Sequence record: PP885688.1
Direction: 5' to 3' (one strand)
DNA length: 64,000 bases
The position numbers and the translations under genes are program-made. Numbering within the stretch: position 1 is the first letter of the stretch; each line of letters opens with the position of its first letter. Below are positions 15,776 to 43,197 of this stretch, in pieces. The notes beneath the pieces were generated by a model, which saw nothing but the letters and a program-made list of their open reading frames with translations, did not search any database and was not told the DNA's origin.

Positions 15776-15994
15776 TTATTGACGTCCGCGAGATGGAAAA
15801 TTGTGGATATTTTCTCCGAGCCATGGGAAGTCCCGCTTCGCTCCAGAGTCGGTCATCATGTTCATCTTGTTGCCAGGGGTCTTGTGCTCAGTCATCGGCG
15901 TGGAGGTGTCCTCGATGTTCATGTCGCCGTTGTCGGAGACCTCACCCTTCTGATCCATTCCGTATGCCCGGCGGCGTAGCAGCTTCGCTCTCAT
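15776..15994 (-). CDS. small protein with KLLxRRA N-terminal motif
   Basis: Start moved to MRAKLLRRRA, GAGGG RBS; motif shared with 20708..23269 and 34840..35796. Confidence 0.6.
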   Translation of the reverse strand: MRAKLLRRRAYGMDQKGEVSDNGDMNIEDTSTPMTEHKTPGNKMNMMTDSGAKRDFPWLGENIHNFPSRGRQ

Positions 15995-16029
15995 AGGTCG
16001 GTCCCTCACTAGGAGGGACCGTAGCTAGT

Positions 16030-16401
16030 TCAGAGGGTTTCGGGTATCTTTTCGACGATGTTCGAAACCGGTGCCAGGGAACCCTTCTGCAGGTAGTAGC
16101 CGATGACCTTGCCGTTCGCGTCTGCGAGACAATCCAGGTTATAGGAGTAGCCCTTTGCCTCGCAGTACGCGATGACATAGGGGAGGAGCATCCGAGCTCC
16201 TGAGTGGTTGGTGCCACCACGATCCTCGAAGGCCTGGATGGTTTGCTTGACCGAGGCGACAGAGGGCCGGTTACGGGCCGGGGTGGAGAGTGGGAAGACT
16301 TCGGGTGCCCGATGCCTGCCGTCCATCTCGAGAATCTCGAGGATCCCGGGGTTATGGACCTGGGGAGACCCAGGCCTGCGATGTGTTACGAGTGCTGACA
16401 C
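16030..16401 (-). CDS. hypothetical protein
   Basis: 123 aa in operon context; start uncertain. Confidence 0.55.
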   Translation of the reverse strand: MSALVTHRRPGSPQVHNPGILEILEMDGRHRAPEVFPLSTPARNRPSVASVKQTIQAFEDRGGTNHSGARMLLPYVIAYCEAKGYSYNLDCLADANGKVIGYYLQKGSLAPVSNIVEKIPETL

Positions 16402-16434
16402 GTTCTCTCCTTCAAAGCCGTTCAGTGTTGGTGG

Positions 16435-16698
16435 TTATTCCAGAAGTCCGATGGCGCGGCGAACCTCTTGAGCCTTCTTGCGGGAACCTGCTTCCTCCCC
16501 GTGGCGATATCCGACTGCGTAGAGGCGGGTCACAGCTTCGAGCTGTTCAATCTCCCAGTTCCCGTGCAGGGTTGCGATGTACCTCTCAAAATCTCCATCC
16601 ATGATTCTGTAATCGTCGCCCTTCTTCAGGACGTTGAGGTCCCCAAAGTTTCCGGCGAGTACGATCTCCTGCTCTACTTTTGGTTCTGTCGCTTCCAT
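16435..16698 (-). CDS. hypothetical protein
   Basis: 87 aa, GAGGAG RBS. Confidence 0.65.
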   Translation of the reverse strand: MEATEPKVEQEIVLAGNFGDLNVLKKGDDYRIMDGDFERYIATLHGNWEIEQLEAVTRLYAVGYRHGEEAGSRKKAQEVRRAIGLLE

Positions 16699-16710
16699 GG
16701 GCTCCTCTTT

Positions 16711-16962
16711 CTAGTTGGTGGTCTTGCTGACGGTCAGAAGCGCTTCGCTCTGAACCACGGTGAAGCCGAGTTCCCGCAGAGTCTGGGCAGCTGCCGAGGC
16801 GAGACGGTTCGCGCGTGTCTCGCTATCGTTCTGGATCGTGACTGTGACCTGTTCCGGGATTGGGGAGCCTGAGACGAGCACACCCTCGTGAAACCGGTCT
16901 GAACAGATGACGAACCCGGCCTTCTTCAATAGCTTGCTGACGTACTGCGGACTTGTCGCCAT
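16711..16962 (-). CDS. hypothetical protein
   Basis: Start moved to MATSPQY, AGGAG RBS. Confidence 0.6.
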   Translation of the reverse strand: MATSPQYVSKLLKKAGFVICSDRFHEGVLVSGSPIPEQVTVTIQNDSETRANRLASAAAQTLRELGFTVVQSEALLTVSKTTN

Positions 16963-16973
16963 CGGTTTGTCTC

Positions 16974-17117
16974 CTATTTCCGGACGAGCAGCTTCCTGAA
17001 CCACGCCTTCAAGTCGTACTTGTGGCGGCCTGGGTGCGCCATCCCCATAGGATGGATACACTCACCAAACCACGGGTGTCGGCCTGCCTGGCAATCGTAG
17101 AACTTCATCATCGGCAT
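16974..17117 (-). CDS. small hypothetical protein (47 aa, below ORF-track cutoff)
   Basis: MPMMKFYDCQAGRHPWFGECIHPMG..RK*, GAGGA RBS, fills the gap exactly. Confidence 0.5.
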   Translation of the reverse strand: MPMMKFYDCQAGRHPWFGECIHPMGMAHPGRHKYDLKAWFRKLLVRK

Positions 17118-17130
17118 TCTTGTTTCCTCA

Positions 17131-17364
17131 CTAGATCTTCACTGCTGTTACAAACTGTTGGCCGGAGCCTTCGAGCGGTTCGCGGAATACACCGGACACC
17201 ATCCATTTTCCAGCATGAAGGTAGCAGCCAATAACCGCAACATTTGAGCTGATGTTCATGCTGCGTTTGGTCACGATGGTTCCGTCGGGAAGCGTCGCCT
17301 GATAGGTCGTTGACTTCTTTCCGGAATTCGCTCCCTGCTGGCCTTTCTTACCGTAAGTTGACAT
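17131..17364 (-). CDS. hypothetical protein
   Basis: Start moved to MSTYGKK, GGAGGG RBS. Confidence 0.6.
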   Translation of the reverse strand: MSTYGKKGQQGANSGKKSTTYQATLPDGTIVTKRSMNISSNVAVIGCYLHAGKWMVSGVFREPLEGSGQQFVTAVKI

Positions 17365-17518
17365 GGTGCCCTCCCATCCCCGCATCAGCAACTCGCGTGC
17401 TTTTTGAATCCTTTGGCGCTGGCCTTGGTGTCCGGAGACGGTAGGCACGGGCTGTAGATAAGCAATCGCCGATGTTGTAAATGCTGATGCCGGGATGGCA
17501 AGGCATCTTGCCATGAAG

Positions 17519-17926
17519 CTAAAACGGGCAGTAATCTTCGCGGCTGGGATCCTCCGTCTGGGTTGGGGTGTCGACAATGGCTACCTTCGGGGAGCGGACG
17601 CCGATCATGAAGTCGGAGTCGCAAACCTCTTCGGGGTTACGAGCCAGGTAGTCGGCGTCTGCCTCTTCGCGGGTGTTGAAGACGGCAAGAATATGGATGA
17701 TGTCGCCAAGGATGGCGTCTGTGCGGGGGCAGAAGGTGGTGGCTGAGGAGAAAACAACGTGCTTACCCTCTCCGATCAAAACTTCCATCTTGTGGCGATC
17801 GTTCGAGCTCACTGACTGTTCGAGGGAAAACTCTGACCGGGACACCGCAAAGGCGGCCTGCGACTCGTTCTGGTAGCGGCCCATCTCGAACTGGCGTTCT
17901 TCCTCTTCTTGAATGTTTCCAAACAT
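17519..17926 (-). CDS. hypothetical protein
   Basis: Start moved to MFGNIQ, AAGGAG RBS, class A motif upstream. Confidence 0.65.
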   Translation of the reverse strand: MFGNIQEEEERQFEMGRYQNESQAAFAVSRSEFSLEQSVSSNDRHKMEVLIGEGKHVVFSSATTFCPRTDAILGDIIHILAVFNTREEADADYLARNPEEVCDSDFMIGVRSPKVAIVDTPTQTEDPSREDYCPF

Positions 17927-17953
17927 TGTGTTCTCTCCTTGTGCCTTCTTACT

Positions 17954-18039
17954 CAACCTACGGACCCGGAAGCGCCAAAGATGAAAATCTAAAAATCTTT
18001 TTTCAAAGTCATTTTTTGAGGGGTCGACCTTGCAGGTTG
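17954..18039. promoter_or_regulatory. divergent pair of class A promoter motifs
   Basis: Minus copy 17954-17984 (TCATCTTT-N12-TCCGTAGGTTG) and plus copy 18009-18039 (TCATTTTT-N12-CTTGCAGGTTG). Confidence 0.65.
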
Positions 18040-18044
18040 TAGGT

Positions 18045-18377
18045 ATGGATAGATTCTTCATAGCTAGACCTTATAGGTATGCGGACGGCGTGCCATGGAA
18101 CGACGACCGCTACGAGATCTTCGTGCTCAATGACAAGCGGGAGCTGGTCAGCGTCGGCGGTGCCATGCGCCGCTGGGACGGGAACACCATCGCTTTCCTG
18201 TGTAAGAAGGCGGTCAATCGCGAGATCCGCACGCCGGTGCAAGCTGAGGCGAAGACCAAAGGCCTGTACGTCTACGGCACCAGCGTGAAGCGGGCCCTGA
18301 ATACTCTCAAGTGGAAGTATCCGGACCCGGAGGCTTTGCTGGCGGAGATCTGGCAACAGGAGATGGCTGCTTTCTAA
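18045..18377 (+). CDS. hypothetical protein
   Basis: Plus-strand ORF MDRFFIARP right after a class A motif. Confidence 0.65.
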   Translation: MDRFFIARPYRYADGVPWNDDRYEIFVLNDKRELVSVGGAMRRWDGNTIAFLCKKAVNREIRTPVQAEAKTKGLYVYGTSVKRALNTLKWKYPDPEALLAEIWQQEMAAF

Positions 18378-19408
18378 GCGATCGGCTGGAGAAGTCGGGA
18401 CTTGCGACCAAACGGGCGATCCTTCTGTGCCCACAGTGCCTTACCGTCTTTTGTCTGCTCAGTCGAGGGAATGATCTTCAGCTTGGTCTTGCGTTCCGCA
18501 AAGACGTACATCGCGGTTGCCAGACCCTGACGCTGGTGTGTGTCGGTGATGTCGAGGGACATGGGGTCGAGGCAGTCGCCGCGATCGGCGAAGGTGACGT
18601 AGCCGATGCTGGTGCCGTCGTAGTAAGCCTTTATCGTAACCATCGGTGTGCCGATGTACGACTTGCCCTTCTCGAAGGTGAGGGTGAAGTCTTTGTACTT
18701 ACCGGCGGGGGAGACGACTACTGGACCGGCGGCGGCCTTCGCCTGTGCATCGAGCTTCTTGGCCATCAGCCACTCGTTCTGGAGCTCTTCCACCTTGACG
18801 AAGCCCAGACTCTCATACCAGCGCAGCAGGTTGAAGCCCTTCTTCTGCTTACGATCTGTGTCGGTTATGAGGAGAGCCGCGACGGCATTGGCGGTGCGAG
18901 CCTGCGCAAGAAAGTCGTTGATGAGTTTGGTGCCTATGCCCTTGCCAGGTGTGTTTGCTTCGATGAAGCCTAGAACTGCTACCTTGTGACCGCGCGTGTA
19001 GGCGAGGCTCTCCGGCAGCCCATCGACCTCGTACTGGCCAAGTTCGTGCATCAGCTCGTCGTCGGTCTCGGTGATCACACCGTGGAACCATCCGTCGGCA
19101 TTCTGTGCTGTGTCATGGATTTTCTGTGCAGCGGTCTTCGGCTCGATCTTCTTGAAGGACTCCTGCGTCCAGAACACCTTCCAACGATTCAGGAAGCGCT
19201 CGGTCTCAGCGCAGTGGCTCTCACCAGGCTTCTCGATGCGCGAGATCACAGCCTCGGCGATGGGCTTGCGGTCGAGGTTGAAGATGATGGGATCGCCGAC
19301 CTTCGCGCGTACCGGCCAGACGAATGCCCAGAACTCTTCGGTGTTCGGTGGCGGCTCTTGCCAGAAGTGACCGTTATCAATTTCAGATTGCGGGACTGTG
19401 ATCTTCAA
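18374..19408 (-). CDS. multi-domain protein with two GNAT acetyltransferase-like domains
   Basis: PGKGIGTKLI..WYESLGF and HQRQGLATAMY..QTKDGKALW; TTG start inferred; ends SRLLQPIA. Confidence 0.7.
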   Translation of the reverse strand: MKITVPQSEIDNGHFWQEPPPNTEEFWAFVWPVRAKVGDPIIFNLDRKPIAEAVISRIEKPGESHCAETERFLNRWKVFWTQESFKKIEPKTAAQKIHDTAQNADGWFHGVITETDDELMHELGQYEVDGLPESLAYTRGHKVAVLGFIEANTPGKGIGTKLINDFLAQARTANAVAALLITDTDRKQKKGFNLLRWYESLGFVKVEELQNEWLMAKKLDAQAKAAAGPVVVSPAGKYKDFTLTFEKGKSYIGTPMVTIKAYYDGTSIGYVTFADRGDCLDPMSLDITDTHQRQGLATAMYVFAERKTKLKIIPSTEQTKDGKALWAQKDRPFGRKSRLLQPIA

Positions 19409-20243: not shown

Positions 20244-20274
20244 GGTTTCCTTTATGACAACAAGTGGAACAGTG

Positions 20275-20586: not shown

Positions 20587-20707
20587 GCGATTCAGGGGTT
20601 CCTTCTATGCGTTTCGACTCAGCCTTAGAACTACTGGGAAGATTGTTCCAGCATAGCGTAAAAATTTCCCACTGTGTGCATAGCTTTGCAGATAGTTTTC
20701 AACAGGC

Positions 20708-23269
20708 CTACGACGCGCGACTCTTCCAGAACGCCTTGCCCGCTTCCGTCTGCGTCTTCGCTGGCTGCAGCTTGATGCCGGTCTGCTGTTCGTAGGTGCG
20801 ATAGAGACCGGTGGCGATTCCACGACGCCGGTAGTTCTCATCGACGTACAGATTCTCTCCCTTGAAGTACTCGTCGTCGAAGGTTGCGCCGTAAGTCTTG
20901 TAGCACTCAACGCGGCCTACTACGTTCGTTGGTTCGAAGCCATCTGGTAGGTCCCTTGCATCGATGCCGAAGACGGACTTGAGGTAGCGTGCCTCGTCCG
21001 GCATGTTCGCAGCCTTGTCGAGGGCGAGCACGACGGCGGTCTCGTCAACGTTGACGATGTAGAAGGTGATGCCTGGTGCGGTGCCAGCTGCGGTCTTTCC
21101 TAAGCCAGCCGCAACCTCACGCGACAATTCGATTAGCTTGTTCAGCTTCACGCCCTTCGCGTTGCGGGCTGAGACCGAGACAGGAAGGTATCCTCTGCCT
21201 GTCTGTAGCGCGGCGGCATACCGATGGTGGCCATCGATCAGCGTTACTACGGGTTGCGTGTCGTCGTTCTTTCGACCGAAGCGGAATGCCGTCACATCGA
21301 CAGGTTCGGAGTAGTCCATGTTGTGAGCTACGTCGTCGCTGACAATCTGAACCTCTGGCCGGAAGTCCATCTCCTGCCGTTCAATCGCCGACAGTGGCAG
21401 GTAGTGGATCGCTGGGATAGGTCCGTTGTACTTCTCCTCCGGCTTGTACTTCTGCCCATCATCTGCCGTAGCTGCCGCCGAGCGCGACAAACTCGTCACG
21501 GTCGGGACATACTCGGTCGTCAACAGCTTGAGACGGTTGGGAGCAATCCTCTGCTTGCATACGTACCAGGGCGTACCCCAATCTTCGTCGCGGAACTGAT
21601 ACCCGCCCTCGTCCGGCTGAATATCCAAGCCCTTGACGTTCACTTCCCAGTGATCGAAGTGCTCGGGCTCTGCCGCCTCACCGCTATTAGGATTTGTAGC
21701 GAGGTACACGCCCTTGCGACTGTACTTCGCAGGGTTGAGTCCGTTCTTCAAGATCTCGTCGCGGTAGTAAGGACTAATGCTGTGGTAGAGGATGTCGGGG
21801 TGAGAAACCGCAGCCGTCTTGCGAAGCGTGTTGACTTCGTCCTGGGGATCGAAGCGACGGATGACGCCGGGCCCGCCAAGCACGATGATCTCGTCGTTCT
21901 CACGGTGAACTGATCGCACACGCACAACCGGGGCAGGGAACGCGAGCAGATCGCCAGCCTTCAGATCCTCAGCCTTCATCCAGCTACCAGTCTTGGCGCT
22001 GGCGGCCTTCTGCTGTTGGTGTACCGGGATCTCTTCGCATATAGAGAGGACATCTTTCCCCTCAACGTTCGCCGCGTCTTCTTTCTTGAAGCGCCAGGCC
22101 GTCGTTGGATAGATGGCACCGAGGTGGGCGAGGTGAGCGCCGTGGTCAAGCATCCACTTCACGACTGCGGGCGATAGGAGCTTCTGGACCTTCTTACCGA
22201 CTGCAGCTTGTCCGTCGATGAAGTGATCCATGATTTTCTGGCGCTGCTTATCCGTCATGACGCGCGACGCGGCCCAGCGAAGTTCATTGCGAACCGTCTC
22301 CGGTGTGCCTGGCTGGTTGATCGGGGAGCTCATCGCCCACTGGATCGCCCGATTGAGGGAGTCAGCCTCTCCAGCCCAGCGCAGAGGTGACTTCTCCTTC
22401 GTAATCTCGCGGTGACGCTTCTCCGCCTTATCCATGCTGAGTAGGTGGCTGATGAATTCACCGATCGAATCTTCATCCGGAACTGCATCCCCGGTGAGGT
22501 CGGCTCCACGCATCTCGAAGATGTAACCGTAGGGTTCGGAACCCTGAACGAACTTCTTGGTCTCCTCGCCGTGGTTGAACATGGATCCGCCGAGCGCGTA
22601 TACGGCGGCGTAGGCAACGTCGTGGCTGACGTAGACCCGGCCCTGAGCTGGTGCCAGCTGAGCGCGGCTCTTGGCTTTGGCGGGCATAGATATTTCGCGA
22701 GGCTGGATGCCAGAGGTGAGGATGGCTTGGGCGGCGGCTTCGGTGGGAGTGCCGTGGAAGTAGGGCCGGTCTGCGGCCTCCGCGTGAAGGGGAGCTGCGG
22801 TCTTGGACAGATTCTGTAGCGCCGCCGGTATGCCTTGACCAGCGGGAAGGCGGGAGAAGCTGGTGCCGTTACCTACACGCTTCTCCCAGGTCTGCGGGTC
22901 TCCATATAGCTTCGTGATGAGTGCGGTATCTGAGAGTGGGATCCGGCCCGGGGTTCCCATGTAGTCGGCTGCCCAGGGATCCACGATGAAGTTGTCGATG
23001 ATCGCGAAGTCGTGGCCACCCTCACCGGCTCCGTCTGCGAGTTCTGCGGTCGGGTTGTCCTTCTTCTGGTAGCCGAAGATCTCGCCGTGGCCGATCTGCT
23101 TGATGACGTTCTCCGCCGCCATGGTGCAGTTTCCCCACGGGTTGCCGGTCTCCTCGATCGCGCCGGTCTCGAAGGCGTCGTCAACATCCTTCATCATCTG
23201 GGCCAGGATCGCGTCGATCTGGTCGGGGAGAGAGCTGGCGCGGCGGGTTAGGAGCTTTGAACGGGACAT
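20708..23269 (-). CDS. polyvalent protein: transglutaminase-like + two ART-like + ParB-like + GNAT domains
   Basis: GNC..H..VDP triad; YFHGT..VYVS..PDEDS; LYHS..GVYLA; LIDGHHRYAAA; NYRRRGIATGLY. Confidence 0.7.
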   Translation of the reverse strand: MSRSKLLTRRASSLPDQIDAILAQMMKDVDDAFETGAIEETGNPWGNCTMAAENVIKQIGHGEIFGYQKKDNPTAELADGAGEGGHDFAIIDNFIVDPWAADYMGTPGRIPLSDTALITKLYGDPQTWEKRVGNGTSFSRLPAGQGIPAALQNLSKTAAPLHAEAADRPYFHGTPTEAAAQAILTSGIQPREISMPAKAKSRAQLAPAQGRVYVSHDVAYAAVYALGGSMFNHGEETKKFVQGSEPYGYIFEMRGADLTGDAVPDEDSIGEFISHLLSMDKAEKRHREITKEKSPLRWAGEADSLNRAIQWAMSSPINQPGTPETVRNELRWAASRVMTDKQRQKIMDHFIDGQAAVGKKVQKLLSPAVVKWMLDHGAHLAHLGAIYPTTAWRFKKEDAANVEGKDVLSICEEIPVHQQQKAASAKTGSWMKAEDLKAGDLLAFPAPVVRVRSVHRENDEIIVLGGPGVIRRFDPQDEVNTLRKTAAVSHPDILYHSISPYYRDEILKNGLNPAKYSRKGVYLATNPNSGEAAEPEHFDHWEVNVKGLDIQPDEGGYQFRDEDWGTPWYVCKQRIAPNRLKLLTTEYVPTVTSLSRSAAATADDGQKYKPEEKYNGPIPAIHYLPLSAIERQEMDFRPEVQIVSDDVAHNMDYSEPVDVTAFRFGRKNDDTQPVVTLIDGHHRYAAALQTGRGYLPVSVSARNAKGVKLNKLIELSREVAAGLGKTAAGTAPGITFYIVNVDETAVVLALDKAANMPDEARYLKSVFGIDARDLPDGFEPTNVVGRVECYKTYGATFDDEYFKGENLYVDENYRRRGIATGLYRTYEQQTGIKLQPAKTQTEAGKAFWKSRAS

Positions 23270-24355: not shown

Positions 24356-24356
24356 G

Positions 24357-32596: not shown

Positions 32597-32613
32597 GGTG
32601 TTCCTCTGCTTTC

Positions 32614-32708
32614 GTGTGCTGTCTTTAGCGGCTTAGGCCGGTTAGTGTGCTGTCGTTAGCGGGTGCCCTCAAGAGCACGTAAAGCGGGATAAGGTGCTCT
32701 TGAGGGCA
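32614..32708. repeat. two 18-nt direct repeats and a perfect 15-bp inverted repeat
   Basis: GTGTGCTGTC(T/G)TTAGCGG at 32614-32631 and 32645-32662; TGCCCTCAAGAGCAC 32664-32678 / GTGCTCTTGAGGGCA 32694-32708. Confidence 0.85.
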
Positions 32709-32713
32709 GGTGG

Positions 32714-33763
32714 TTACTTCTTGTCGGGCTGCGGCCAGGGTTCGGTCGGCTGCCCGCGAGAGGGGAGGGGTGCGCAGGTGTCGGAACCAAACCACGGCTT
32801 GAAGAAGGGGCGGTTGGTTGGCGTTTCGTCTGCCTCGTAGTCGCCGGTGGCCTTGATCTCCTCGATCTTGGTAAGGGCCGCGTGAGCGAGGATGAGGTGG
32901 TTAGGCATGATCTGGTCGAGCGGGATCCCGTCGAACCAGCGGACCTCTTCGAGATCGTCAGAGGCGATCGCAAGCTGATCCTTACCGGCGTTGATCATGA
33001 ATAGTGCGGTCATGATCTTGTCCTTGGCGCTACGGTAGCGGTGATCGTCGATGCGATAGCTGCCGATGTAGGTCGCGTTCACGACGTTGATGCCGGTCTC
33101 TTCATCCACTTCGCGGCAAGCTGCGAACTCTAACGAAGGATCCGTGGGATCTACGAAGCCACCGGGGAAGCGGTAGAGAGTCTCGCCATGCTTGCGACCA
33201 AGAAGGATGCGGACGGGGTCGATGCCTGGCTGAGCCGAGTCAAAGATGGCCATGTCGACGCACTGATAGGAGATAGGGAAGCGCTGCTGGGTGGAGTAGA
33301 TGATGCCAGCGCGGAAGTCTTCAGAAGCGCGGGCGTGCTTGCCGATCTGTGCGCGAACCTCGGTGCCGGAGGGCGCTGCGAGCTCAGGGAGGACAACGGC
33401 GGAGAACTTGCCGGTGTAGTGCTTGATGAACGAGTCGCGTGATCCGTAGAGGACCGGTGTCAGATCTCCGGCTGCGTAGGCGACGCGTGCATCGAGCGCC
33501 TTGCTCCACTCTTCGTCGGAGGCCATGTCCGGAATGTCCATGGTGTAGTTGCCGACGCCGAGCTTCTCGGTGAACATCTGGCGGCGCGTCTCATAGTCCA
33601 GGGGGTTGGTGTCGGTACCACGTGTGACAGAGGTTCCGATCATGATCAGAACCTTCTCGTGCCGTTCTGCTACGCGGTTGATCAGCGAGCGGTGGCCTTC
33701 GTGTAGCTTTGTGACCTGAAAGCGTCCAACGACTACGCCGATCGTCTTTGAATCTCGTGCCAT
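32714..33763 (-). CDS. bifunctional NMN adenylyltransferase / Nudix hydrolase (NadM-Nudix, NatV-like)
   Basis: VVGRFQ..LHEGH, NPL, SGTEVR; Nudix box PGGFVD..REVDEETG. Confidence 0.9.
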   Translation of the reverse strand: MARDSKTIGVVVGRFQVTKLHEGHRSLINRVAERHEKVLIMIGTSVTRGTDTNPLDYETRRQMFTEKLGVGNYTMDIPDMASDEEWSKALDARVAYAAGDLTPVLYGSRDSFIKHYTGKFSAVVLPELAAPSGTEVRAQIGKHARASEDFRAGIIYSTQQRFPISYQCVDMAIFDSAQPGIDPVRILLGRKHGETLYRFPGGFVDPTDPSLEFAACREVDEETGINVVNATYIGSYRIDDHRYRSAKDKIMTALFMINAGKDQLAIASDDLEEVRWFDGIPLDQIMPNHLILAHAALTKIEEIKATGDYEADETPTNRPFFKPWFGSDTCAPLPSRGQPTEPWPQPDKK

Positions 33764-34839: not shown

Positions 34840-35796
34840 TTACTGAGGGGAAGATTCCTGCTTGACGTGCTCAACCAGCCACAGAGGCTTGTCGTAGGTG
34901 CTCTTCTTGTCGCTCTTCGTGATCCGGATATCGACGCCCTCTGCTGGCACCGGTAGCAATGTAACCTGGCCCGGCTTCGTAGGAAGTTGCTCCGGCGTCA
35001 TCCCTGCAAACGCGTAACCACCGATAACCTGATCGTTGGTGAGCAGATTCTGGAAGGTGACGCCAGGAGCGCGGGGAGCGATGCTAGCTTCCTTGACCTC
35101 GACAGGCTCAGCGTCGAAGTCCTTTGAAGTGACTCCGTCGGCGATCTGCTCCACGTCGATGAACATGCTGGCGCTGTCTTCGACCCACTCCACGTTGAGT
35201 CTGCGGCGGACTCGGTCAAACAGTTCGCGGGCCTGGTCATCATCGAGACCATCGATCAGGTCGGCGTTCTCCGGCAGCTTGTTCTCCAAGGCACGGATGA
35301 AGTCATAGTGCGCCCACTCGTTCCAGGCATCGTCGATCGCCTCATGACCAGCCTGGGCGTGGTCGTCAGAGTCCATGGTGGGGTCCTGATCGAGGGCCTT
35401 GAGGTCATCGAGGATCGAGCCTGTGATGGCGCTGATGCGGATCGCGATGCCGAAGGAGCCCTTATCGCCCTTGATCGGGAACACACCTTCGATGTCGGCG
35501 TAGCGCTTGAGGAAGACTCGATAGTTGCTGACCGCTGCCGCATCCTTCTGCAGGTCTGAGCCGGTGAGGCTGTTCGGCAGGAGGAAGGAGCCGGGATCGA
35601 TCTCGCCGCTGCCATTCTCGTTGTGGCGGATGTCGCGGAAGAGCTCGGGCGCTTCCTTGTCGGAGAGGTAGACCTCTTCACGGTGATGGCGGACGTAGTC
35701 CAGCACTTCGGCGGACGCGTCTACAGCGTGAACTTCAACTTCGGGCTCGGCCTGTACAACATCGGCGATGCGGATCAACAGCTTGCTCTTGGACAT
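34840..35796 (-). CDS. acidic hypothetical protein, possibly virion-associated
   Basis: Start moved to MSKSKLLIRIA, GGAG RBS. Confidence 0.7.
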   Translation of the reverse strand: MSKSKLLIRIADVVQAEPEVEVHAVDASAEVLDYVRHHREEVYLSDKEAPELFRDIRHNENGSGEIDPGSFLLPNSLTGSDLQKDAAAVSNYRVFLKRYADIEGVFPIKGDKGSFGIAIRISAITGSILDDLKALDQDPTMDSDDHAQAGHEAIDDAWNEWAHYDFIRALENKLPENADLIDGLDDDQARELFDRVRRRLNVEWVEDSASMFIDVEQIADGVTSKDFDAEPVEVKEASIAPRAPGVTFQNLLTNDQVIGGYAFAGMTPEQLPTKPGQVTLLPVPAEGVDIRITKSDKKSTYDKPLWLVEHVKQESSPQ

Positions 35797-35807
35797 TACG
35801 GTGACTC

Positions 35808-36227: not shown

Positions 36228-36282
36228 TTAGAACCTACCCGAACGAGGATTGGATCGTTGACCGCTACTTCTCCGTTACCCT

Positions 36283-37307: not shown

Positions 37308-37334
37308 GAAAAGGCCTCATGTGCTAATACCCAT

Positions 37335-39401
37335 CTAGGAGGCTCTTGCCTGAATAAGTCGTGAACCCCAATCTGCGGGTCGTCCTTTCGGCTTCTTGGT
37401 CAGCGAGTCGTGGATCGTGACATGGAAGGCTCGCGGGGTGCTGCGGGTGCTCTGATCGCGGTAGAACTCGATGACGTCCTTCGGGGTTCCGTCGGGATCT
37501 TTGACCTCGACGATGTTGAGCTCCAGGTGGCGGACCTCGGGGGTGCGCTGCACGGTCGCGGCGGTCACAACCTTCTTATAGGTGGCGTCGGTGAAGGCCA
37601 GCGGCATCTCGAAGCTTCCTTCGTACATGCGGAGGGTCGGATCCTGGGAGCTCATGCCGGAGTCGGTGGCACTTTCGCCGGTGATGTCACGGAAGCAATC
37701 CTGTGCGAGGCCGGTGACCTCGACGATCTCGTCCTCGGTGTACTTCATGGAGAGCAGGAAGGCCGAGATATCGTCGAGCAGAGCAGAGCAGGCCTGGCGG
37801 CTGAAGCTCGAGACTTCGGCGTGCGTCAGACCGTTGATCGGGAAGGTAATTGTGAATTGGGTGAAATTGGGTATGCCTAGGTCGAGGCCGATGGTGACCT
37901 GTGGACGCGTGCCCTGCTCGATAGCAACAGTAAGCTCGGCGTTGCGTGGGGAGATGAAGGCGGTCTTCGGGGCGGTGACGGGGCGATAGGCCTGGATCGC
38001 GGTGTCACCACGCAGTCGTGCTGCACAGATGCGATGGAAACCGTCGATGACTCGACCTTTGCGGCTAACCACTACGGGCGGGAACGGTGTCTTCTCGTCT
38101 GCATACTCGCGGATCCGCTCAGCGGGAGATGGGGTATCGGCCTGGAAGCGGAACTCGAGACTCTCCATGTTTCGCGCATTCCAAAGGTCGTCGGGGTGGA
38201 GCTCGTTCAGATTGAACGTGCCCAGTTTCCACTCGGGGCACTGCGCGATCTGCCTGGCATACGATTCCTTGCCGTTGAAGCCGCTACCCTTGGTGATGCC
38301 GCGAACGTACTGGATCAGATCTTTGGAGGAGATGGTGTCTGGACCCTGCACCGCAATCTTCATCACATAGATGCCATTCTTCGCGTCTCTCTTCACTGGA
38401 TAGCGCTGCTTCAAACGTCCCCAGGCCTTCTTGGCGTCAGACGTCTGGTCGCTGCTCGACTGGAAGTACTCGGCTCCGAGCTTCTTCGCTTCCTCGATCG
38501 CCTTGTCATAGAGCAGCTGGCCGAGGCCGGTACCGCGCCAGTCATCCTCGACGTTGATGTCGTAGACCATGAGGGCGTTTGCGTCTTGGTTCTCGGGCTT
38601 GCCGACTTCGATGTAGCCGACCGTGACGCCGCCATCACGCAGACGTTCGGTGTGCGGATACATCTCGGCAGGAGCGACAGCCCAGATGACCCACAGCTCG
38701 TTCAGCGCGGGCGTACCGTCATTCACAAAGCGGAGTTGAGAGAGATCTTTCGCCGCGCCGGTCTTAGCCGCTGGCTCCTTCGGTTCACCGTACACAGCGA
38801 ACACAGGCTCGGGCTTGATACTCTTTGAAATCGTCGTATTCTCAACCGAGTCCACGAGGCCAAAGTTGATGCGTCCGTTATTCCCACCGATGTAGCTGAT
38901 GATCCAATCCCGACCGTCATAATGCAGCGGCTTGCCGACATATTGATCAGCGTAACGACGCGCGTCGCCGACCACACGGGGGTGCTCCGGTGCACGGTGC
39001 TGCCACAGTTTGAAGGCGTCGTCCGACACGGAGTGAAGCGGAACGCCCATTCCGGGGACAAGTTTCAGACCGTTGGTCCTGAGCCATGCATCCGCTGCGT
39101 CGTAGAGCTTGGTGGCAACGCCCTTGCGCTGGAACTTCGGGTCCACGGCGGCCTTGTATACGGTGCGCTCATCCTTGGGGCAGTCGTCACACTTCCACGG
39201 CCACAGTGAGATGTAGCCGATGAGACGGGTTCCAATGTAGGCCCGGAACTCATACTCACCGCCGCCTCTGCGTCCCTGGCCCTGGCGGATTTTGACCTTG
39301 TCGATGGTGAAGCCAGCAGGCACGGGCGTCTCGCTGGTGAACATCTCTTTACCAGCGGCGAGGGTTGTGATCGGGTTGAGCAGACTGGCGCGGACGGTCA
39401 T
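37335..39401 (-). CDS. polyvalent protein: two GNAT domains + ParB-like domain
   Basis: FQRKGVATKLY; WRGTGLGQLLY..QTSDAKKAW; PPVVV..VIDGFHRICAA; start MTVRASLL with AGGGG RBS. Confidence 0.7.
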   Translation of the reverse strand: MTVRASLLNPITTLAAGKEMFTSETPVPAGFTIDKVKIRQGQGRRGGGEYEFRAYIGTRLIGYISLWPWKCDDCPKDERTVYKAAVDPKFQRKGVATKLYDAADAWLRTNGLKLVPGMGVPLHSVSDDAFKLWQHRAPEHPRVVGDARRYADQYVGKPLHYDGRDWIISYIGGNNGRINFGLVDSVENTTISKSIKPEPVFAVYGEPKEPAAKTGAAKDLSQLRFVNDGTPALNELWVIWAVAPAEMYPHTERLRDGGVTVGYIEVGKPENQDANALMVYDINVEDDWRGTGLGQLLYDKAIEEAKKLGAEYFQSSSDQTSDAKKAWGRLKQRYPVKRDAKNGIYVMKIAVQGPDTISSKDLIQYVRGITKGSGFNGKESYARQIAQCPEWKLGTFNLNELHPDDLWNARNMESLEFRFQADTPSPAERIREYADEKTPFPPVVVSRKGRVIDGFHRICAARLRGDTAIQAYRPVTAPKTAFISPRNAELTVAIEQGTRPQVTIGLDLGIPNFTQFTITFPINGLTHAEVSSFSRQACSALLDDISAFLLSMKYTEDEIVEVTGLAQDCFRDITGESATDSGMSSQDPTLRMYEGSFEMPLAFTDATYKKVVTAATVQRTPEVRHLELNIVEVKDPDGTPKDVIEFYRDQSTRSTPRAFHVTIHDSLTKKPKGRPADWGSRLIQARAS

Positions 39402-39408
39402 AGTTCCC

Positions 39409-42400
39409 CTACTTACCATCCGGTAGCGAACCGGCGGCGGTATAGTCTGCGGTCTCTCCGTTGAGCCATGCGAGGAAGGCGGGGTCCGACTTAATGCCAG
39501 CAGGTGCTGCCGCCTGCTTGCGTGGCTGCAGGAGCCTCGACGTCTTTTGAGGAGCGTCTGTGTCGTGTTCCAGTTCCTGCTGCAGCTGTTCTGGTGTGGT
39601 CTTATCAAAGGAATCGCGATAGTCGTTCTTTACGGAGTTGACTACCTCGTGATACTTACCACTGATGTTCTCACTGAGCGACGGCTTGTCTTCGCTGCGC
39701 CGGTCTTCCATGTCGTCGCTCTTGTAGCCCTTCGGGAGCTGATCGATCCTCTGTGTGAAGCTGCTGGGTTGTGTCGTTGGCTGTTGTTGAGTGGGTTGCG
39801 TGTTTCCCGGATGAGCCATCATGAACGGAGCGAGGGCGAGGCCCAGCCAGTCCTTCTTTGCAGCTTCCTTGTTGGCAACGTACTCGGCCCAGTGCTGTTT
39901 GCGCTCCGCTTCAGGGTTGGTGGATGCGAGATGAGTGTTCGTGAGATCGAGGTACTTCGCAGTAAATGAGCGGCCAAGGATTGCGGCTGCGGTTGCGCGA
40001 TGGTTTCCGTCGAGCAGCCACAGGCCAGACTGCGTCTTCGCGACGATCATCGGCTCTTTGTCCGACGTTGCGTCCACCAGATCGGGGTGCGCGAGAAAGT
40101 AGTCGACGCCCTTCGCGGTCACCATGTTCTGGCTGACCTTCACCTGATCGGGACTGAACGTCTTGGTCTCTGCCTCCGCCATCAGCTTGTGTAGTGGAGT
40201 CGTGAGCGTGAAGAGCTTCATGAATGTTGGGCCGGACTCGTCAACCTTCAACCACCGCTGCTTGACCCAAGTCTTGTAGGGGGCTTCCACGTATGGCGAT
40301 GTGAGGTCCTCTTCTGTGTGCCAAACACCTGTCTTGGCTATCGCGCCAACGATCTTCACTGGTCCGATGTGTGCGGCCTTACCGCTGTCCCGTATGATCT
40401 GTTTCGAGATCTCGGGCTTCTGCTTCGCGAGGACAATCGCCAGACGCTTCAGATAGCGGAAGAACATGGTCCGCTTGATCGGAGACGCCAGATCTTGAAT
40501 CGCTTCACGGCGGTTGCCCTTCCAGTCCGGGTCTCCGCCAGAGCAGATCCAGAACATGTTGAAAACCTCGGCAAAGTAGTGGTCATTACCGTTGAGCTCT
40601 CCACCCTCAATCAGCTCGCCGAGGGAGTCTTCGTCGGGGATCAGGTGAGAGTCACCCGAGTCGACCTGAACCTGCAGCACGACACCGTCTTCCCCTGCGT
40701 AGTTCTCCGCGATCACAGGATCGGTGGTGATGTAGACCGCGTTCTCCTGGGGTGCTGGGCCTCCGCTGTTCTGTGCCTTTCCGGGGACGATCTCACCTGC
40801 AGCCTCGATCGCCGCCGCATTGGCCGCAGAGGTGCCGTGATACCACTTCTCGGCAGAGGCACTCTTGCGCGTTACGAAGTTGAATCGGTCGAGCTCTTCG
40901 CCGTTGAGCTGATCGAAGGTCTTTCCGGGCGCGACCTCTTCCAGTGCAGCCTTGAACTCTGGCGACGCCATGTATTTGCGGCCAGCTTCACGGGCCTCAT
41001 TCACTGTAAGGAATCGAGCCTTCTTGCTTGCGGTGGTGCTGTGATTCTGAGTGCTGAACTCGCCGTTATTGCCAATGGCTGACTTTGCCTGGCTCTTGTC
41101 GAAGATCTTGTACTCGACCTCACCGGAGTTCTCGCCATAGCCTTCGTGAATCGCACCGTCGAAGCCCTTCGCTTTAGCCTCCGCAATGAACTCGTTGTCT
41201 CCGAGAAGTGGGAACGCGAACATGTAGAGCTCGTGTAGACGATCCGGGGCCTCGGTCAGCATTTGCTCAACGCTATCGAACTCCTGAGACCAATCCTCCT
41301 CCCACGCACCCGTCTCGCTGATTCCGTCAGCATGCTTGAGCGCGTACTTCATGGCGACGTCCTCACCCATCTGTGTGGCGAGATCTGAGAAGTTGATGAA
41401 CGGCTCGTCGAGCGTGTTCAAGATCGGATTCTCGATGCGCAGATAGCAGGCGTAGACACGTGGTCGGGCAGGTATGTCACCCTGCTCATTCGGTGACTCT
41501 GCGTAGAGGCTGGCGGTACCGGCGTCGCCGAAGCTGATTGCTGTATCGCGAGAGTGAAACTCTTCGTTCGACTCTCCATGCTCCCCGCGATAGACGACGA
41601 GAGGATTGCCTTGGGCATCCTTGACGAGGGAGTTGCGAAACCACGCTTTGAAGGCTGGTGTGTCTGTGAGTTTCTGTGCCTGGGCCGGTGCCTCTGCGAC
41701 CGCAGCGGTAACCGCGAAAGAGTATGAGTGATTCCCTTCGTAGCCGTCGTCCTCAGCCTCAGCTGCGGTTTGGATAACGATCGGATAGTCCGTGTGGAAC
41801 TGGTCGTAGGTTGGATCCACGACAAGACCCTGTATCGTCAGCCATGTGTGGGAGACCCCGTTGTACTCCCCGGCGGTCATCGCACAGCGGTGTCCGTTCT
41901 TGGTGAGCAGGGTGTAGAGCTCCTCGGTGACGGGGATGCAGTCTCCGTCCTTCGCAGTGCGGGTTCCTATCGTGTTGTGACGTGCCTGCTGGGCGACCTC
42001 GGTGAGTTGTTCGTTTGTCAGCGGGGCGGAAGCCGTAATGCTCTTATTGTTTGGATCGAACGCGCCACTGTTGCCGATCGCAGACTTGACTTGATTAGGA
42101 TTGAAGACGATCCAGCTGTCATTCCCGGCGTCCTCGACGACGTTCTCGTAAACGATTCCGTCGTACCCCATACCCTCAAGGACCTTGAAGGCCGCGTCGT
42201 TGTCGTACTGGAGCTCCCAGAACGTGTCGCTGTCGATGATGTTCTGTTCGCGTAGGGTCATGGCGACGGAATCTTCGCCTTCCCAGCCGCGTGGGTAACG
42301 TCGCTCTCCATCCTCGTCGTCATCCGAGAGCGGCTCACCATCGTCACCGATGGAAGCAAGGTCAGGTAGACGCAGGGCATTCTTGATCGACAGGTAGACA

Positions 42401-43197
42401 GGAACGATGTTCGCGCCATGGCTGCGTGCGGGGTTCTTGATGGTGTTGTCGTAGAAGCTGGTCAGATCGGAGTGCCGATCGTTCGCGGCTTGCTGCGTCC
42501 CAAAGTGTGTGAACGCGCGGAACTCTCCGATGTCGGACTGGGTCGCGTGGTACATCACGAGTGGCTTGCCCGCCTTGTCGACTACCTCTGACCCGGCGAA
42601 CCAGGCCTTGAATGCCGGTGTCTCAGTGACCGGCATAGTGGCCGGTTTTGACTCCGCGGAATTCGCTGATTCTGGGGTGTTTACCTCAACCTCTGGCTCT
42701 GCGATGGCCGCTTGTTTGGCCGATCCTTTTCCGAGGCCCTTCTCGTCTAGAATCCCCTTGAGGTGGTCGAGGAGTTCTTCCAGCGTCTCGTATACCGGCA
42801 TACCGGCACGCTCGCAGACAATGTCCACGTTTCCCTTGCGGTAGAAGCCTTGGGGACACGCCACAGCGCCGGGCACTTCGAGGTGCGCTCCGAGTTCTTC
42901 GAAGGTGATGGGTGACTTGCTGCTCTCCTCAAAGTTGAAGATGCGGAAATCGGCGGCTTCGAGGTTGTCCTGCTCCCACTCGACCTGCTCGCGGAAGTTG
43001 GGGTCATCCTTGCTCTGCTCCCACGACGAGTCCCAGTCCGCGCGGCGCGGGTTGGTGAGCACGACGTCGTAGTCAGCAAGGGCCTCGACGACCATCTTCT
43101 GCCAGTCGCGTGACTCGCCCATGTCGATGGTGCCTGCCAAGAAGATGCTGAACCGGTCCGCCGGTACCTTGTGTGGTGCTTGGATCTCTGTCGCCAT
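39409..43197 (-). CDS. large polyvalent protein: NDT-like + two ART-PolyVal + transglutaminase-like + ART + ParB-like
   Basis: IFLAGTIDMG..W..NPRR..EWE; twice TPAFKAWF..D..G.PLV.Y..GYDG..VKSAIGN.G.F; GDC..HTW..VDPT; WYHGT..PDEDS; LLDGNHRATAA. Confidence 0.75.
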   Translation of the reverse strand: MATEIQAPHKVPADRFSIFLAGTIDMGESRDWQKMVVEALADYDVVLTNPRRADWDSSWEQSKDDPNFREQVEWEQDNLEAADFRIFNFEESSKSPITFEELGAHLEVPGAVACPQGFYRKGNVDIVCERAGMPVYETLEELLDHLKGILDEKGLGKGSAKQAAIAEPEVEVNTPESANSAESKPATMPVTETPAFKAWFAGSEVVDKAGKPLVMYHATQSDIGEFRAFTHFGTQQAANDRHSDLTSFYDNTIKNPARSHGANIVPVYLSIKNALRLPDLASIGDDGEPLSDDDEDGERRYPRGWEGEDSVAMTLREQNIIDSDTFWELQYDNDAAFKVLEGMGYDGIVYENVVEDAGNDSWIVFNPNQVKSAIGNSGAFDPNNKSITASAPLTNEQLTEVAQQARHNTIGTRTAKDGDCIPVTEELYTLLTKNGHRCAMTAGEYNGVSHTWLTIQGLVVDPTYDQFHTDYPIVIQTAAEAEDDGYEGNHSYSFAVTAAVAEAPAQAQKLTDTPAFKAWFRNSLVKDAQGNPLVVYRGEHGESNEEFHSRDTAISFGDAGTASLYAESPNEQGDIPARPRVYACYLRIENPILNTLDEPFINFSDLATQMGEDVAMKYALKHADGISETGAWEEDWSQEFDSVEQMLTEAPDRLHELYMFAFPLLGDNEFIAEAKAKGFDGAIHEGYGENSGEVEYKIFDKSQAKSAIGNNGEFSTQNHSTTASKKARFLTVNEAREAGRKYMASPEFKAALEEVAPGKTFDQLNGEELDRFNFVTRKSASAEKWYHGTSAANAAAIEAAGEIVPGKAQNSGGPAPQENAVYITTDPVIAENYAGEDGVVLQVQVDSGDSHLIPDEDSLGELIEGGELNGNDHYFAEVFNMFWICSGGDPDWKGNRREAIQDLASPIKRTMFFRYLKRLAIVLAKQKPEISKQIIRDSGKAAHIGPVKIVGAIAKTGVWHTEEDLTSPYVEAPYKTWVKQRWLKVDESGPTFMKLFTLTTPLHKLMAEAETKTFSPDQVKVSQNMVTAKGVDYFLAHPDLVDATSDKEPMIVAKTQSGLWLLDGNHRATAAAILGRSFTAKYLDLTNTHLASTNPEAERKQHWAEYVANKEAAKKDWLGLALAPFMMAHPGNTQPTQQQPTTQPSSFTQRIDQLPKGYKSDDMEDRRSEDKPSLSENISGKYHEVVNSVKNDYRDSFDKTTPEQLQQELEHDTDAPQKTSRLLQPRKQAAAPAGIKSDPAFLAWLNGETADYTAAGSLPDGK

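Follow-up and report, generated by a model that had tools for sequence, protein, structure and literature searches.

A composite junction peptide in polyvalent effector proteins of the jumbo phage Tunturi_5, with its core enriched in head proteins

Short peptides recur at the ends and domain boundaries of several proteins encoded in a 64,000-nucleotide stretch (referred to here as the window) of record PP885688.1, which comes from the 309-kb genome of Tunturiibacter phage Tunturi_5, a jumbo phage whose host group is the Acidobacteriota. Why should otherwise unrelated proteins share them? A sequence-only reading of the window had proposed two signals, a terminal tag and internal cut sites, in an effector cocktail packaged in the head. 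All 14 terminal and linker peptides quoted there were found on the minus strand, at or adjoining the places given for them and within annotated CDSs. One string, placed near 39409, is real but lies at 39490-39552, 30 to 43 residues before the end of gp225, and MTVRASLLNP, taken as an N-terminal copy of the motif, is present but has no basic residue ahead of its LL. The motif-bearing CDSs of the window, all on the minus strand, are gp195, gp203, gp205, gp220, gp224, and gp225 (Table 1), to which we add gp198, a leader-bearing protein that the sequence-only reading did not list.

Table 1. Motif-bearing genes of the window and the positions of their leaders, junctions, and tails
Feature	Position	Strand	Description
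gp195	15776..15994	-	72-aa protein
gp195 N-terminal leader	15962-15994	-	M-R-A-K-L-L-R-R-R-A
gp198	16711..16962	-	83 aa
gp198 leader	16915-16962	-	ending ...S-K-L-L-K-K-A-G
gp203	18374..19408	-	344 aa, TTG start; N-terminal domain, then two GNAT domains
gp203 junction	19121-19153	-	P-K-T-A-A
gp203 relaxed junction	18722-18754	-	K-A-A-A
gp203 C-terminal tail	18377-18409	-	...K-S-R-L-L-Q-P-I-A-stop
gp205	20708..23269	-	853 aa; leader, N-domain, ART-like domain, small beta domain, unassigned region, GNAT domain
gp205 leader	23234-23269	-	M-S-R-S-K-L-L-T-R-R-A-S
gp205 junctions	22787-22819, 21803-21835, 21080-21112	-	K-T-A-A
gp205 relaxed junction	21992-22024	-	K-A-A-S
gp220	34840..35796	-	318 aa; leader, acidic spacer, two folded domains without assigned function
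gp220 leader	35761-35796	-	M-S-K-S-K-L-L-I-R-I-A-D
gp224	37335..39401	-	688 aa; annotated "portal," polyvalent-type build; leader-like N-terminus, GNAT, K-T-G-A-A, GNAT, ParB-like region, K-T-A-F, C-terminal domain
gp224 leader-like N-terminus	39351-39401	-	...R-A-S-L-L-N-P...L-A-A
gp224 junction	38748-38780	-	K-T-G-A-A
gp224 junction	37950-37982	-	K-T-A-F
gp224 tail	37338-37376	-	...W-G-S-R-L-I-Q-A-R-A-S-stop
gp225	39409..43197	-	1262 aa; nucleoside deoxyribosyltransferase-like domain, two ART-PolyVal domains, further modules
gp225 relaxed junction	42700-42732	-	K-Q-A-A
gp225 junction	42022-42054	-	I-T-A-S
gp225 junction	40849-40881	-	K-S-A-S
gp225 full composite	39490-39552	-	T-S-R-L-L-Q-P-R-K-Q-A-A-A-P

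Form and position of the peptide

Both of the proposed signals are real motifs but, judged from the sequences, the LL-basic and the KTA-type motifs belong together as the halves of a single composite junction peptide, with an approximate consensus of [ST]-[KR]-L-L-x(0-3)-[KR]-[TS or other]-A that is followed mostly by A or S and also by G or another residue. The halves are joined at the N-termini of relatives (P0009, P0004, P0006, P0011, P0016, P0019, P0030, and P0035) and at internal junctions (P0013, P0008, P0027, P0031, and P0035), and gp225 itself carries the joined form. Some proteins have the composite peptide at the N-terminus and others at the C-terminus; in fused versions it is internal. 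As a leader it is found in gp195, gp198, gp205, gp220, gp272, and gp273, and the C-terminal motif occurs also in gp321 and gp273; gp272, gp273, and gp321 lie outside the window, where they adjoin head or tail genes. We rejected the idea that the leaders are Sec/Tat signal peptides, because no hydrophobic stretch was found behind them, acidic or polar spacers following instead, and the same peptide is also internal and C-terminal.

The bearers are indeed otherwise unrelated, since their leader-bearing N-terminal regions show no mutual similarity by BLASTP. Pfam likewise confirmed that many-domain effectors are among them, with ART-PolyVal, GNAT, NUDIX, and other effector domains in one chain. 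Nucleoside deoxyribosyltransferase-like, ParB-like, InPase, and 2H domains complete the polyvalent set, with Nuc_deoxyri_tr2 and two ART-PolyVal domains in gp225 (PF18760, E = 4.6e-32), NUDIX, ART, and GNAT in gp273 (PF18760, E = 3e-42), SprT-like, 2H, ART, and GNAT in gp321 (PF18760, E = 6e-48), and InPase (PF18823, E = 5.9e-34) and GP88 in gp272. Of the two ART domains that had been proposed for gp205, the second finds no confirmation in Pfam, and the backing for the first consists of precomputed Pfam matches of relatives and weak fold matches. The portal annotation of gp224 was rejected in view of its two GNAT domains and ParB-like match, the true portal being gp7, and the region 16000-18400, considered as a broken gene, instead holds small intact ORFs.

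The placement of KTA-type strings at domain boundaries also held, as they fall outside each family's best Pfam domain stretch (gp203, gp205, gp225, gp272, gp273, and gp321) or in low-confidence linkers. In the AlphaFold2 model of gp205, a confident block (residues 160-418) begins directly after the first junction and the relaxed junction lies inside a low-confidence stretch (419-430), while in the gp220 model the leader belongs to a low-confidence region, with residues 1-25 predicted to be disordered. Of BLAST segments, 46% start at most 25 residues from a strict site or a terminus, compared with 27% for random sites (maximum of 39% in 500 trials). At the gp205 ART domain, the A-A-P that follows the Lys hardly varies in any relative and could belong to the fold.

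Each relative has its own module order, and the ends of genes fall on junctions. Of the 7 relatives with a complete N-terminus, 6 retain the leader of gp220, with a spacer behind it that varies while the leader stays, and the leaders of gp205 and gp220 are internal in P0008 and P0013, that of gp220 in P0013. Residue 1 of gp203 aligns just after a K-K-A junction of fused relatives: its N-domain forms the C-terminal module of P0003, P0004, P0006, and P0007, where K-K-A precedes it, and P0022 retains K-T-A at the same place. On the best reading of these alignments, many terminal copies are junctions left standing at the end of a gene. The motif was not found in a 2772-aa polyvalent protein of an unrelated cyanophage or in the ART genes of Tenacibaculum phage pT24, and at the level of these sequence comparisons it is shown to be restricted to the Tunturi_5 lineage.

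Enrichment in head proteins and conservation in the maturation protease

To gauge the motif against background, as the sequence-only reading had suggested, we scanned the whole proteome. K[TS]A[AS] was observed 29 times, against 8.9 +/- 3.2 expected from within-protein shuffles (0 of 300 reached 29), and order-permuted control motifs stayed at or below expectation, an excess beyond chance. Among 10,558 candidate starts in six frames, the leader regex, ^M.{0,8}[KR]LL.{0,1}[KR].A, matched 8, of which 5 are annotated starts, where 0.10 would be expected (P about 9e-8); 5 of 6 leader-type matches lie at annotated N-termini. The C-terminal form [ST][KRY]L[LI]Q has exactly 4 matches in the proteome, every one within the last 8-43 residues of a polyvalent protein.

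Per 1000 aa, K[TS]A[AS] sites number 1.69 in head-module proteins, 1.22 in polyvalent proteins, and 0.12-0.13 in tail and other proteins; the resulting ∼10-fold difference in density between the first two and the last two (odds ratio of 11.5, P = 3.6e-10) is to be read with categories that were drawn partly after the matches had been seen. An unbiased ranking of 4-mers put KTAS first in the head set after a Gly run, and KTAA high in the polyvalent set and missing from the top of the remaining proteins. In the polyvalent proteins of relatives, KTAA occurs 13 times versus 0.44 expected. Relatives of gp332, whose gene is located between the protease and capsid genes, hold 1.58 sites each versus 0.27 expected, clustered at recurring positions. 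The relaxed variants in gp332 (K-Q-A and K-V-A) show no conservation, which makes sites called outside the strict core uncertain.

The head-maturation protease gene, gp331, lies outside the window, and its product carries two motif sites, at residues 33 and 265, which form conserved islands within variable sequence toward both protein ends. In the alignment of relatives, core identity is 0.64 versus 0.29 in the flanks at the first site and 0.61 versus 0.15 at the second; the first site keeps K in 51/52, A in 52/52, and S or A in 47/51 relatives. The protein has no Pfam or PDB sequence match to known proteases, and its relatives are gp19 of phage G and a Bixzunavirus protein. The Tunturi_5 capsid protein has its match in gp27 of phage G; its own L-L-K-S-A-A near residue 19 is uninformative, since the entire N-terminus is conserved, and the motif is absent at the corresponding place of the phage G capsid homologue (PDB 6wkk). 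Further sites, one strict K-T-A-S and several relaxed ones, occur in gp350, annotated as DarB-like, and one IMG/VR contig encodes a gp331-type protease with a site together with a polyvalent ORF that has three junctions. Enrichment in the head module together with conservation in the maturation protease is the pattern expected of a prohead-protease site, and the likeness to such a site that had been suggested is borne out to this extent.

Processing, docking, or remnant

The best explanation, to which we give an even chance, is that the head-maturation protease gp331 recognizes and cuts the composite peptide, which marks capsid cargo. Peptide-bearing proteins would enter the prohead, where the protease would cut after the Ala, taking off N-terminal leaders of 10-16 residues and separating the ART, GNAT, NUDIX, ParB-like, and other modules of the multi-enzyme proteins from one another. 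The single modules would exit the capsid along with the DNA at infection. Terminal copies would stem from gene fission or fusion at a junction. The C-terminal half-sites (S-R-L-L-Q-x-x-A-stop) resemble the left side of a junction and may represent a docking peptide that needs no cut. That the peptide is cut, that gp331 cuts it, and that the proteins are packaged and injected are inferences.

It is unlikely that the peptide is the cleavage site of another, cytoplasmic protease, such that polyproteins are cut after synthesis and without any link to the capsid. Candidates would be the SprT-like zincin domain of gp321, the HslV-family protein gp106, or a host enzyme. In favor of this reading, gp321 has a SprT-like match (residues 129-237, E = 2.3e-5), HExxH motifs are present in relatives P0004 and P0009, and zincin-type autoprocessing of polyvalent proteins was predicted by Iyer et al. 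in 2017 (PMC5512222). The gene setting points the same way. The polyvalent genes of the window (gp203, gp205, gp224, and gp225) are surrounded by replication and NAD-metabolism genes, a single neighbor bearing the annotation "virion structural protein," and a promoter-like motif, TGGGTATTA[GC], stands in front of gp225, gp223, and gp219 and occurs mostly before replication and nucleotide-metabolism genes. The motif and neighborhood of gp225 suggest joint expression with replication genes, and in general they argue against purely late, head-coupled expression of these genes. Against a cytoplasmic protease, the SprT-like match is slightly under the Pfam cutoff (24.7 versus 25.6 bits), and the core is enriched in non-polyvalent proteins of the head module, without enrichment in tail or other proteins, and conserved at both ends of the maturation protease.

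We consider it improbable that the peptide is an uncut docking or linker element, in which a common partner (scaffold, capsid shell interior, portal, chaperone, or host protein) would bind L-L-basic-Ala wherever it is placed. The C-terminal copies of gp203, gp224, P0025, and P0027 stop at the Ala or one residue later and need no cut, most members of the gp224-type C-domain close with W-[EQ]-S-[RK]-L-[LI] and 2-4 further residues, the disordered gp220 leader is accessible in the model, and encapsulins offer a precedent (see below). Against docking, the K-[TS]-A-[AS] half is present without the LL half in the protease gp331, gp328, gp345, and gp348, 59% of sites have A or S next to the Ala on its C-terminal side (A and S make up ∼16% of the proteome), which looks like the subsite preference of a protease, and tandem copies (K-K-A, then K-L-L-x-K-x-A) occur in P0002, P0005, and P0008. 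The notion of a functionless evolutionary leftover, kept where modules recombine, fits the variable module order and the gene ends at junctions but is very improbable, given that upstream DNA holds no repeats before leader-bearing genes and no DNA-level similarity surrounds the leaders, that the motif is degenerate in protein and spans only 4-12 residues, and that it is kept amid variable flanks in the non-modular protease and enriched in head proteins not subject to shuffling. A Shine-Dalgarno-like GAGGGA lies upstream of gp195.

Known systems and a possible cargo code

Both polyvalent proteins and T4-type targeting leaders are already known. The former, described by Iyer, Burroughs, Anand, de Souza, and Aravind (2017; PMC5512222), are large chains of unrelated effector domains in phages and conjugative elements, predicted to be packaged, processed, and injected, with processing ascribed to embedded zincin or assemblin-like peptidases. 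The Tunturi_5 set (ART, GNAT, NUDIX, InPase, 2H, ParB-like, and zincin, with at least two unrelated effector domains per chain) resembles them down to the signature families ART-PolyVal (PF18760) and InPase (PF18823). What sets it apart is a defined junction and terminal peptide shared with head-morphogenesis proteins; that paper reports no motif at linkers or termini (it uses the word "linker" 0 times), and neither the junction motif nor its tie to the gp331 protease family was found in the literature searched.

In T4, where capsid targeting has been demonstrated by experiment, the internal proteins IPI-III carry N-terminal targeting leaders of 10-19 residues that end in a prohead protease site and are removed by that protease, which has candidate sites at its own ends, and the packaged ADP-ribosyltransferase Alt is trimmed at both termini (PMC9026906). 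The short leader common to gp195, gp198, gp205, gp220, gp272, and gp273 is similar in kind and ends in basic-x-Ala, the same core that is conserved in gp331 and enriched in the head module. Unlike the T4/SPN3US type, with cleavage after Glu (A-x-E in SPN3US), the Tunturi_5 motif ends in Ala, and unlike in T4 the peptide also lies between domains and at C-termini. The head of the phiKZ-like giant phage SPN3US contains many internal or ejected proteins, a subset with propeptides bearing repeated protease motifs, and its protease gp245 cuts itself and ejection proteins (PMC10052503). Tunturi_5 is likewise a jumbo phage with motif sites in its own maturation protease but belongs to another lineage with another motif, and its candidate substrates are multi-enzyme chains with sites at their junctions in place of single proteins that carry long N-terminal propeptides. 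The large Dar/DdrB effectors of phage P1 are loaded into the head, DdrB being proteolysed before packaging (as summarized in PMC5512222), and gp350 recalls them by its annotation and motif sites; no shared peptide code for Dar/DdrB is described in the part of the literature covered by our search.

Encapsulins, HK97-fold shells, take up unrelated enzymes by means of short terminal peptides (PMC10960027 and PMC8229669). Their loading involves no proteolysis and the sequences are unrelated; the analogy is one of function and extends to the LL half alone. Combining it with the protease reading gives a more specific proposal that we put forward tentatively, namely, a two-part cargo code of a soil jumbo phage clade, in which S-[KR]-L-L docks inside the HK97-fold head and K-[TS]-A is the cut site. 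The first half would dock from either terminus in the manner of encapsulin targeting peptides, and the prohead protease would want Lys third before the cut and Ala directly before it, a Lys/Ala type of specificity not found for prohead proteases in the literature searched. If such a code holds, polyvalent proteins would be true polyproteins divided by the capsid's own protease, and sequence alone could reveal which proteins these phages inject. The clade taken in by this proposal comprises at least 161 IMG/VR contigs; phage G and Bixzunavirus are its distant kin.

A composite peptide in polyvalent proteins

Tunturiibacter phage Tunturi_5 (PP885688.1), of which the window covers bases 124001-188000, is a 308,711-bp myovirus whose host is an acidobacterium from Finnish tundra soil (PMC11924767). 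The sequence-only reading had drawn attention to short peptides shared by the termini and linkers of otherwise unrelated proteins, and all of the peptides that it quoted were found on the minus strand, inside six annotated genes. Between 16000 and 18400 the ORFs are small and intact, ruling out a broken gene, and Shine-Dalgarno-like sequences lie at the correct spacing before the annotated starts of gp195, gp203, gp205, gp220, and gp224.

Genes and sites discussed in the text (window coordinates unless marked as record or prefixed with a locus)
Feature	Length	Strand	Position	Annotation or remark
gp195	72 aa	minus		carries quoted peptide
gp203	344 aa	minus		NUDIX
gp205	853 aa	minus		ADP-ribosyltransferase exoenzyme toxin
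gp220	318 aa	minus		carries quoted peptide
gp224	688 aa	minus	37335-39401	portal
gp225	1262 aa	minus		NUDIX
gp225, end		minus	39409-39500	tail past composite motif
gp217, gp218		minus	31196-33763	nicotinamide phosphoribosyltransferase; cytidyltransferase
gp241, gp245, gp246		minus	50852-63998	baseplate wedge subunit (gp241); regulator of chromosome condensation (gp245, gp246)
TGGGTATTA[GC], window examples		minus	15754; 27892; 34818; 37332; 43257	promoter-like motif
gp7			record 9889-12336	portal
gp90			L006:18759-19988 (record 68759-69988)	major head protein
gp279			L003:11135-12583 (record 233135-234583)	tRNA nucleotidyltransferase
gp348	530 aa		L004:30926-32518 (record 302926-304518)	adjoins DarB-like gp350
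Mycobacterium phage Bread gene 97	1369 aa		L095:5013-9122	protease domain at N-terminus

Domains of the window proteins were assigned with Pfam and PHROGs. gp225 combines a nucleoside deoxyribosyltransferase-like domain with two ART-PolyVal domains, gp203 contains two GNAT domains, and gp205 carries a GNAT domain at its C-terminus. gp224 is made up of two GNAT domains, a ParB-like segment, and a C-terminal domain frequent in polyvalent proteins (effectors with many unrelated enzyme domains in one chain), so that it is not a portal; that protein is gp7. Two ART domains had been proposed for gp205. The first is retained weakly, on precomputed ART/PARP Pfam matches among relatives of the central domain and on an AlphaFold2 model with just weak ART-fold entries among its top fold matches, whereas the second was not confirmed; fold searches with the gp205 and gp220 models gave no match at E ≤ 0.001. 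Outside the window, gp272 (InPase and GP88), gp273 (1489 aa; NUDIX, ART, and GNAT), and gp321 (1362 aa; SprT-like, 2H, ART, and GNAT) have similarly mixed contents; like the multi-domain proteins of the window, they belong to the polyvalent class as Iyer et al. 2017 defined it (PMC5512222). The short tail at the end of gp225 resembles the start of another ART-PolyVal module (FKAW-type starts) and looks like one truncated module.

The terminal motifs and linkers had been described as two separate signals. Both are present, but they are halves of one composite peptide, since an LL half and a K-T-A half are joined in metagenome relatives, namely, at the N-termini of relatives of gp205 (P0004, P0006, P0009, and P0011), of gp220 (P0015, P0016, P0018, and P0019), and of gp224 domains (P0027, P0030, and P0035). 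The composite is approximately [ST]-[KR]-L-L-x(0-3)-[KR]-[TS/x]-A, with A or S after the junction Ala in 59% of sites. It occurs as an N-terminal leader, as a junction between modules, and as a C-terminal tail. The gp205 leader is found mid-protein in P0008, before a gp205-type N-domain, and the gp220 leader is internal in P0013, after an additional N-terminal domain, while S-[RY]-L-L-[LQ]-P-K-x-[AS] is repeated between modules in P0027, P0031, and P0035. In P0003, P0004, and P0006, the residue just past a K-K-A junction aligns with residue 1 of gp203, and P0007 has K-R-A at this place, preceding the gp203-type domain. K-T-A-[YF] precedes the gp224-type C-terminal domain in 10 of 11 fetched members; where this domain is C-terminal, most members close with W-[EQ]-S-[RK]-L-[LI] and a further 2 to 4 residues. 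In gp203 the tail S-R-L-L-Q-P-I-A/V-stop comes after a GNAT domain and in P0025 after the gp224-type C-terminal domain, and the gp203 relative P0022 has three G-[PS]-K-T-A junctions as well as a K-R-S-K-L-L tail. Querying IMG/VR with the gp205 alignment gave 7 loci; single-protein scans of this database did not find close relatives of gp205 and gp348.

Frequency and placement of the motif

A genome-wide scan had been suggested as a check, and we ran it piecewise over the whole genome, using a heuristic proteome of 320 ORFs (92 k residues); the motif proved to be above background and wider than first reported. The strict site K[TS]A[AS] was observed 29 times versus 8.9 ± 3.2 in within-protein shuffles (reached in 0 of 300), with order-permuted and substituted controls at or below expectation. 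Leaders of the form [KR]-L-L-x(0-1)-[KR]-x-A open gp195, gp198, gp205, gp220, and gp273, with a close variant in gp272. Of the 8 matches to the leader expression found when 10,558 candidate starts were scanned in six frames, five are annotated starts (0.10 expected; P about 9e-8). All four occurrences of [ST][KRY]L[LI]Q in the proteome lie within the last 8 to 43 residues of gp203, gp224, gp225, and gp321, and the C-terminus of gp273 has a related Q-L-L...K-A-S-S. Given that gp272, gp273, and gp321 lie outside the window, they serve as a hold-out confirmation of the motif.

The leader-bearing regions are otherwise unrelated to one another. A DNA-level repeat or common 5' region behind the N-terminal motif was ruled out, as the upstream regions fail to align, and a signal peptide was ruled out because a hydrophobic core is absent. 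A further leader match, R-K-S-K-L-L-K-F after an internal in-frame Met of gp279, could be chance or an internal start.

The claim that the linkers fall at domain boundaries held: none of the strict or relaxed sites (the latter including K-[AQV]-A) of gp203, gp205, gp225, gp272, gp273, and gp321 falls inside the best Pfam domain stretch per family. In the gp205 model, the sole confident block (160-418) starts directly after the first junction (156-159), and the next low-confidence stretch (419-430) contains a relaxed site; in the gp220 model, residues 1-25, comprising the leader and an acidic spacer, are disordered. Across 18 polyvalent proteins, 46% of BLAST segment starts were ≤25 residues from a strict site or terminus, compared with 27% for randomized sites (maximum of 39% in 500 trials).

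Sites in the protease and head-module proteins

The density of K[TS]A[AS] per 1000 aa was 1.69 in the head-module set (gp328-335, gp345-350, and the portal), 1.22 in polyvalent proteins, 0.13 for the tail, and 0.12 for the remaining proteins, a contrast with an odds ratio of 11.5 (P = 3.6e-10) for protein categories that are partly post hoc. An unbiased ranking of 4-mers placed KTAS as the top non-repeat word of the head set and KTAA among the top words of the polyvalent set, and both are absent from the top words of the rest.

Two sites are present in the head-maturation protease gp331 (phrog_18299) itself, K-T-A-A (residue 33) and K-V-A-S (residue 265), and in 38 distinct relatives both are conserved islands amid variable flanks. 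By analogy with T4 and SPN3US, these positions are consistent with self-trimming at both ends. Relatives of gp332, encoded between the protease and capsid genes, average 1.58 strict sites versus 0.27 expected, at recurring positions; the relaxed sites of gp332 were dropped as evidence because they are not conserved. gp334, the capsid protein, is similar to phage G gp27 (PDB 6wkk; E = 2.7e-57), and its L-L-K-S-A-A near residue 19 is uninformative, since the entire N-terminus is conserved and phage G lacks the motif there. gp348 has four strict sites, three within its first 75 residues, a region much like a multiply cut propeptide. gp90, annotated as a head protein, matches AAA ATPase and BCS1 N-terminal Pfam families; it is an AAA ATPase, and the capsid protein is gp334.

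gp331 gave no Pfam match and no PDB sequence or profile match. It is related to phage G gp19 and to the N-terminus of a Bixzunavirus protein. In Mycobacterium phage Bread this protein (gene 97) is encoded directly before the capsid gene; it has K-T-A-G immediately behind the protease domain and a second time close to the C-terminus. The site excess in Bread g96 and g97 is weak (1 and 2 sites), and no cleavage sites are reported in the phage G genome paper.

Searching IMG/VR recovered at least 161 relatives of the capsid gene, the contigs reaching 463 kb in length. On one such contig, a protease that has K-T-A-A at residue 33 is encoded alongside a 1667-aa polyvalent ORF containing three strict junctions. 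A 2772-aa polyvalent protein of Planktothrix phage Pag-Yong1 showed no excess (1 site versus 0.23 expected) and no [ST][KR]LL, and the ART genes of Tenacibaculum phage pT24 had zero sites. The motif is thus no inherent property of ART-PolyVal domains, nor of polyvalent proteins generally; it accompanies the Tunturi_5 phage lineage.

Proposed processing and alternatives

We are highly confident that the peptide is a selected short linear motif, and it is probably a proteolytic site. The best reading, held at even odds, is that the maturation protease recognizes the peptide and cleaves there; gp331 has perhaps an even chance of being the protease concerned, and packaging of the peptide-bearing proteins is a prediction that could fall either way. 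Under this proposal, peptide-bearing cargo would enter the prohead, leaders would be removed, multi-enzyme proteins would be cut to modules, and the modules would exit the capsid together with the DNA. Gene splitting and fusion at junctions would account for the terminal copies, and C-terminal half-sites might allow docking without a cut. The scheme is like that of T4, with its capsid-targeting leaders and an Alt protein trimmed at both ends, and like the propeptides of SPN3US/phiKZ. However, it belongs to neither system: the Tunturi_5 motif ends in Ala, where theirs end in Glu, and no similarity of gp331 to solved or curated proteases could be detected.

Some observations count against head processing. 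The window effector genes lie in a neighborhood of replication and NAD-metabolism genes. The near-invariance of A-A-P after Lys before the gp205-type ART is another such observation, as these residues might be structural. A late-promoter motif common to head and window effector genes was not established; a different, promoter-like motif, TGGGTATTA[GC], has 44 copies in the whole genome, nearly all on the coding strand and 12 to 70 nt before a gene start. It mostly precedes replication and nucleotide-metabolism genes and is also found before gp335 and gp325 and, contrary to what head processing would favor, before gp225, gp223, and gp219. Processing in the cytoplasm, whether the embedded SprT-like zincin or a different protease is responsible, would fit such a neighborhood, and zincin processing was proposed in the paper defining the class, which describes no linker motif (PMC5512222); set against the site density of the head-module set, we consider it unlikely. 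That the peptide serves for docking or as a linker and is never cut is somewhat less probable still. A recombination leftover with no function today, which might explain copies at gene ends, is very improbable.

Polyvalent proteins are widespread, and their loading and cutting were previously inferred solely from embedded peptidase domains. A junction and terminal peptide common to the maturation protease and head-module proteins offers a concrete hypothesis, checkable by virion proteomics. If true, it would assign a specificity (basic-x-Ala before a small residue) to a protease family without any solved or curated relative, of which phage G and Bixzunavirus have members, make capsid cargo among small orphan proteins (gp195, gp198, and gp220) predictable from sequence, and explain the placement of gene boundaries in fast-shuffling effector genes.

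Two further observations concern the gene order of the window. The genes for gp217 and gp218, the latter possibly an NMN adenylyltransferase, stand between two ART-rich gene groups, and a NAD-salvage pair adjoining many NAD-consuming enzymes is noteworthy. gp241, gp245, and gp246 are three very large ORFs of a tail module.
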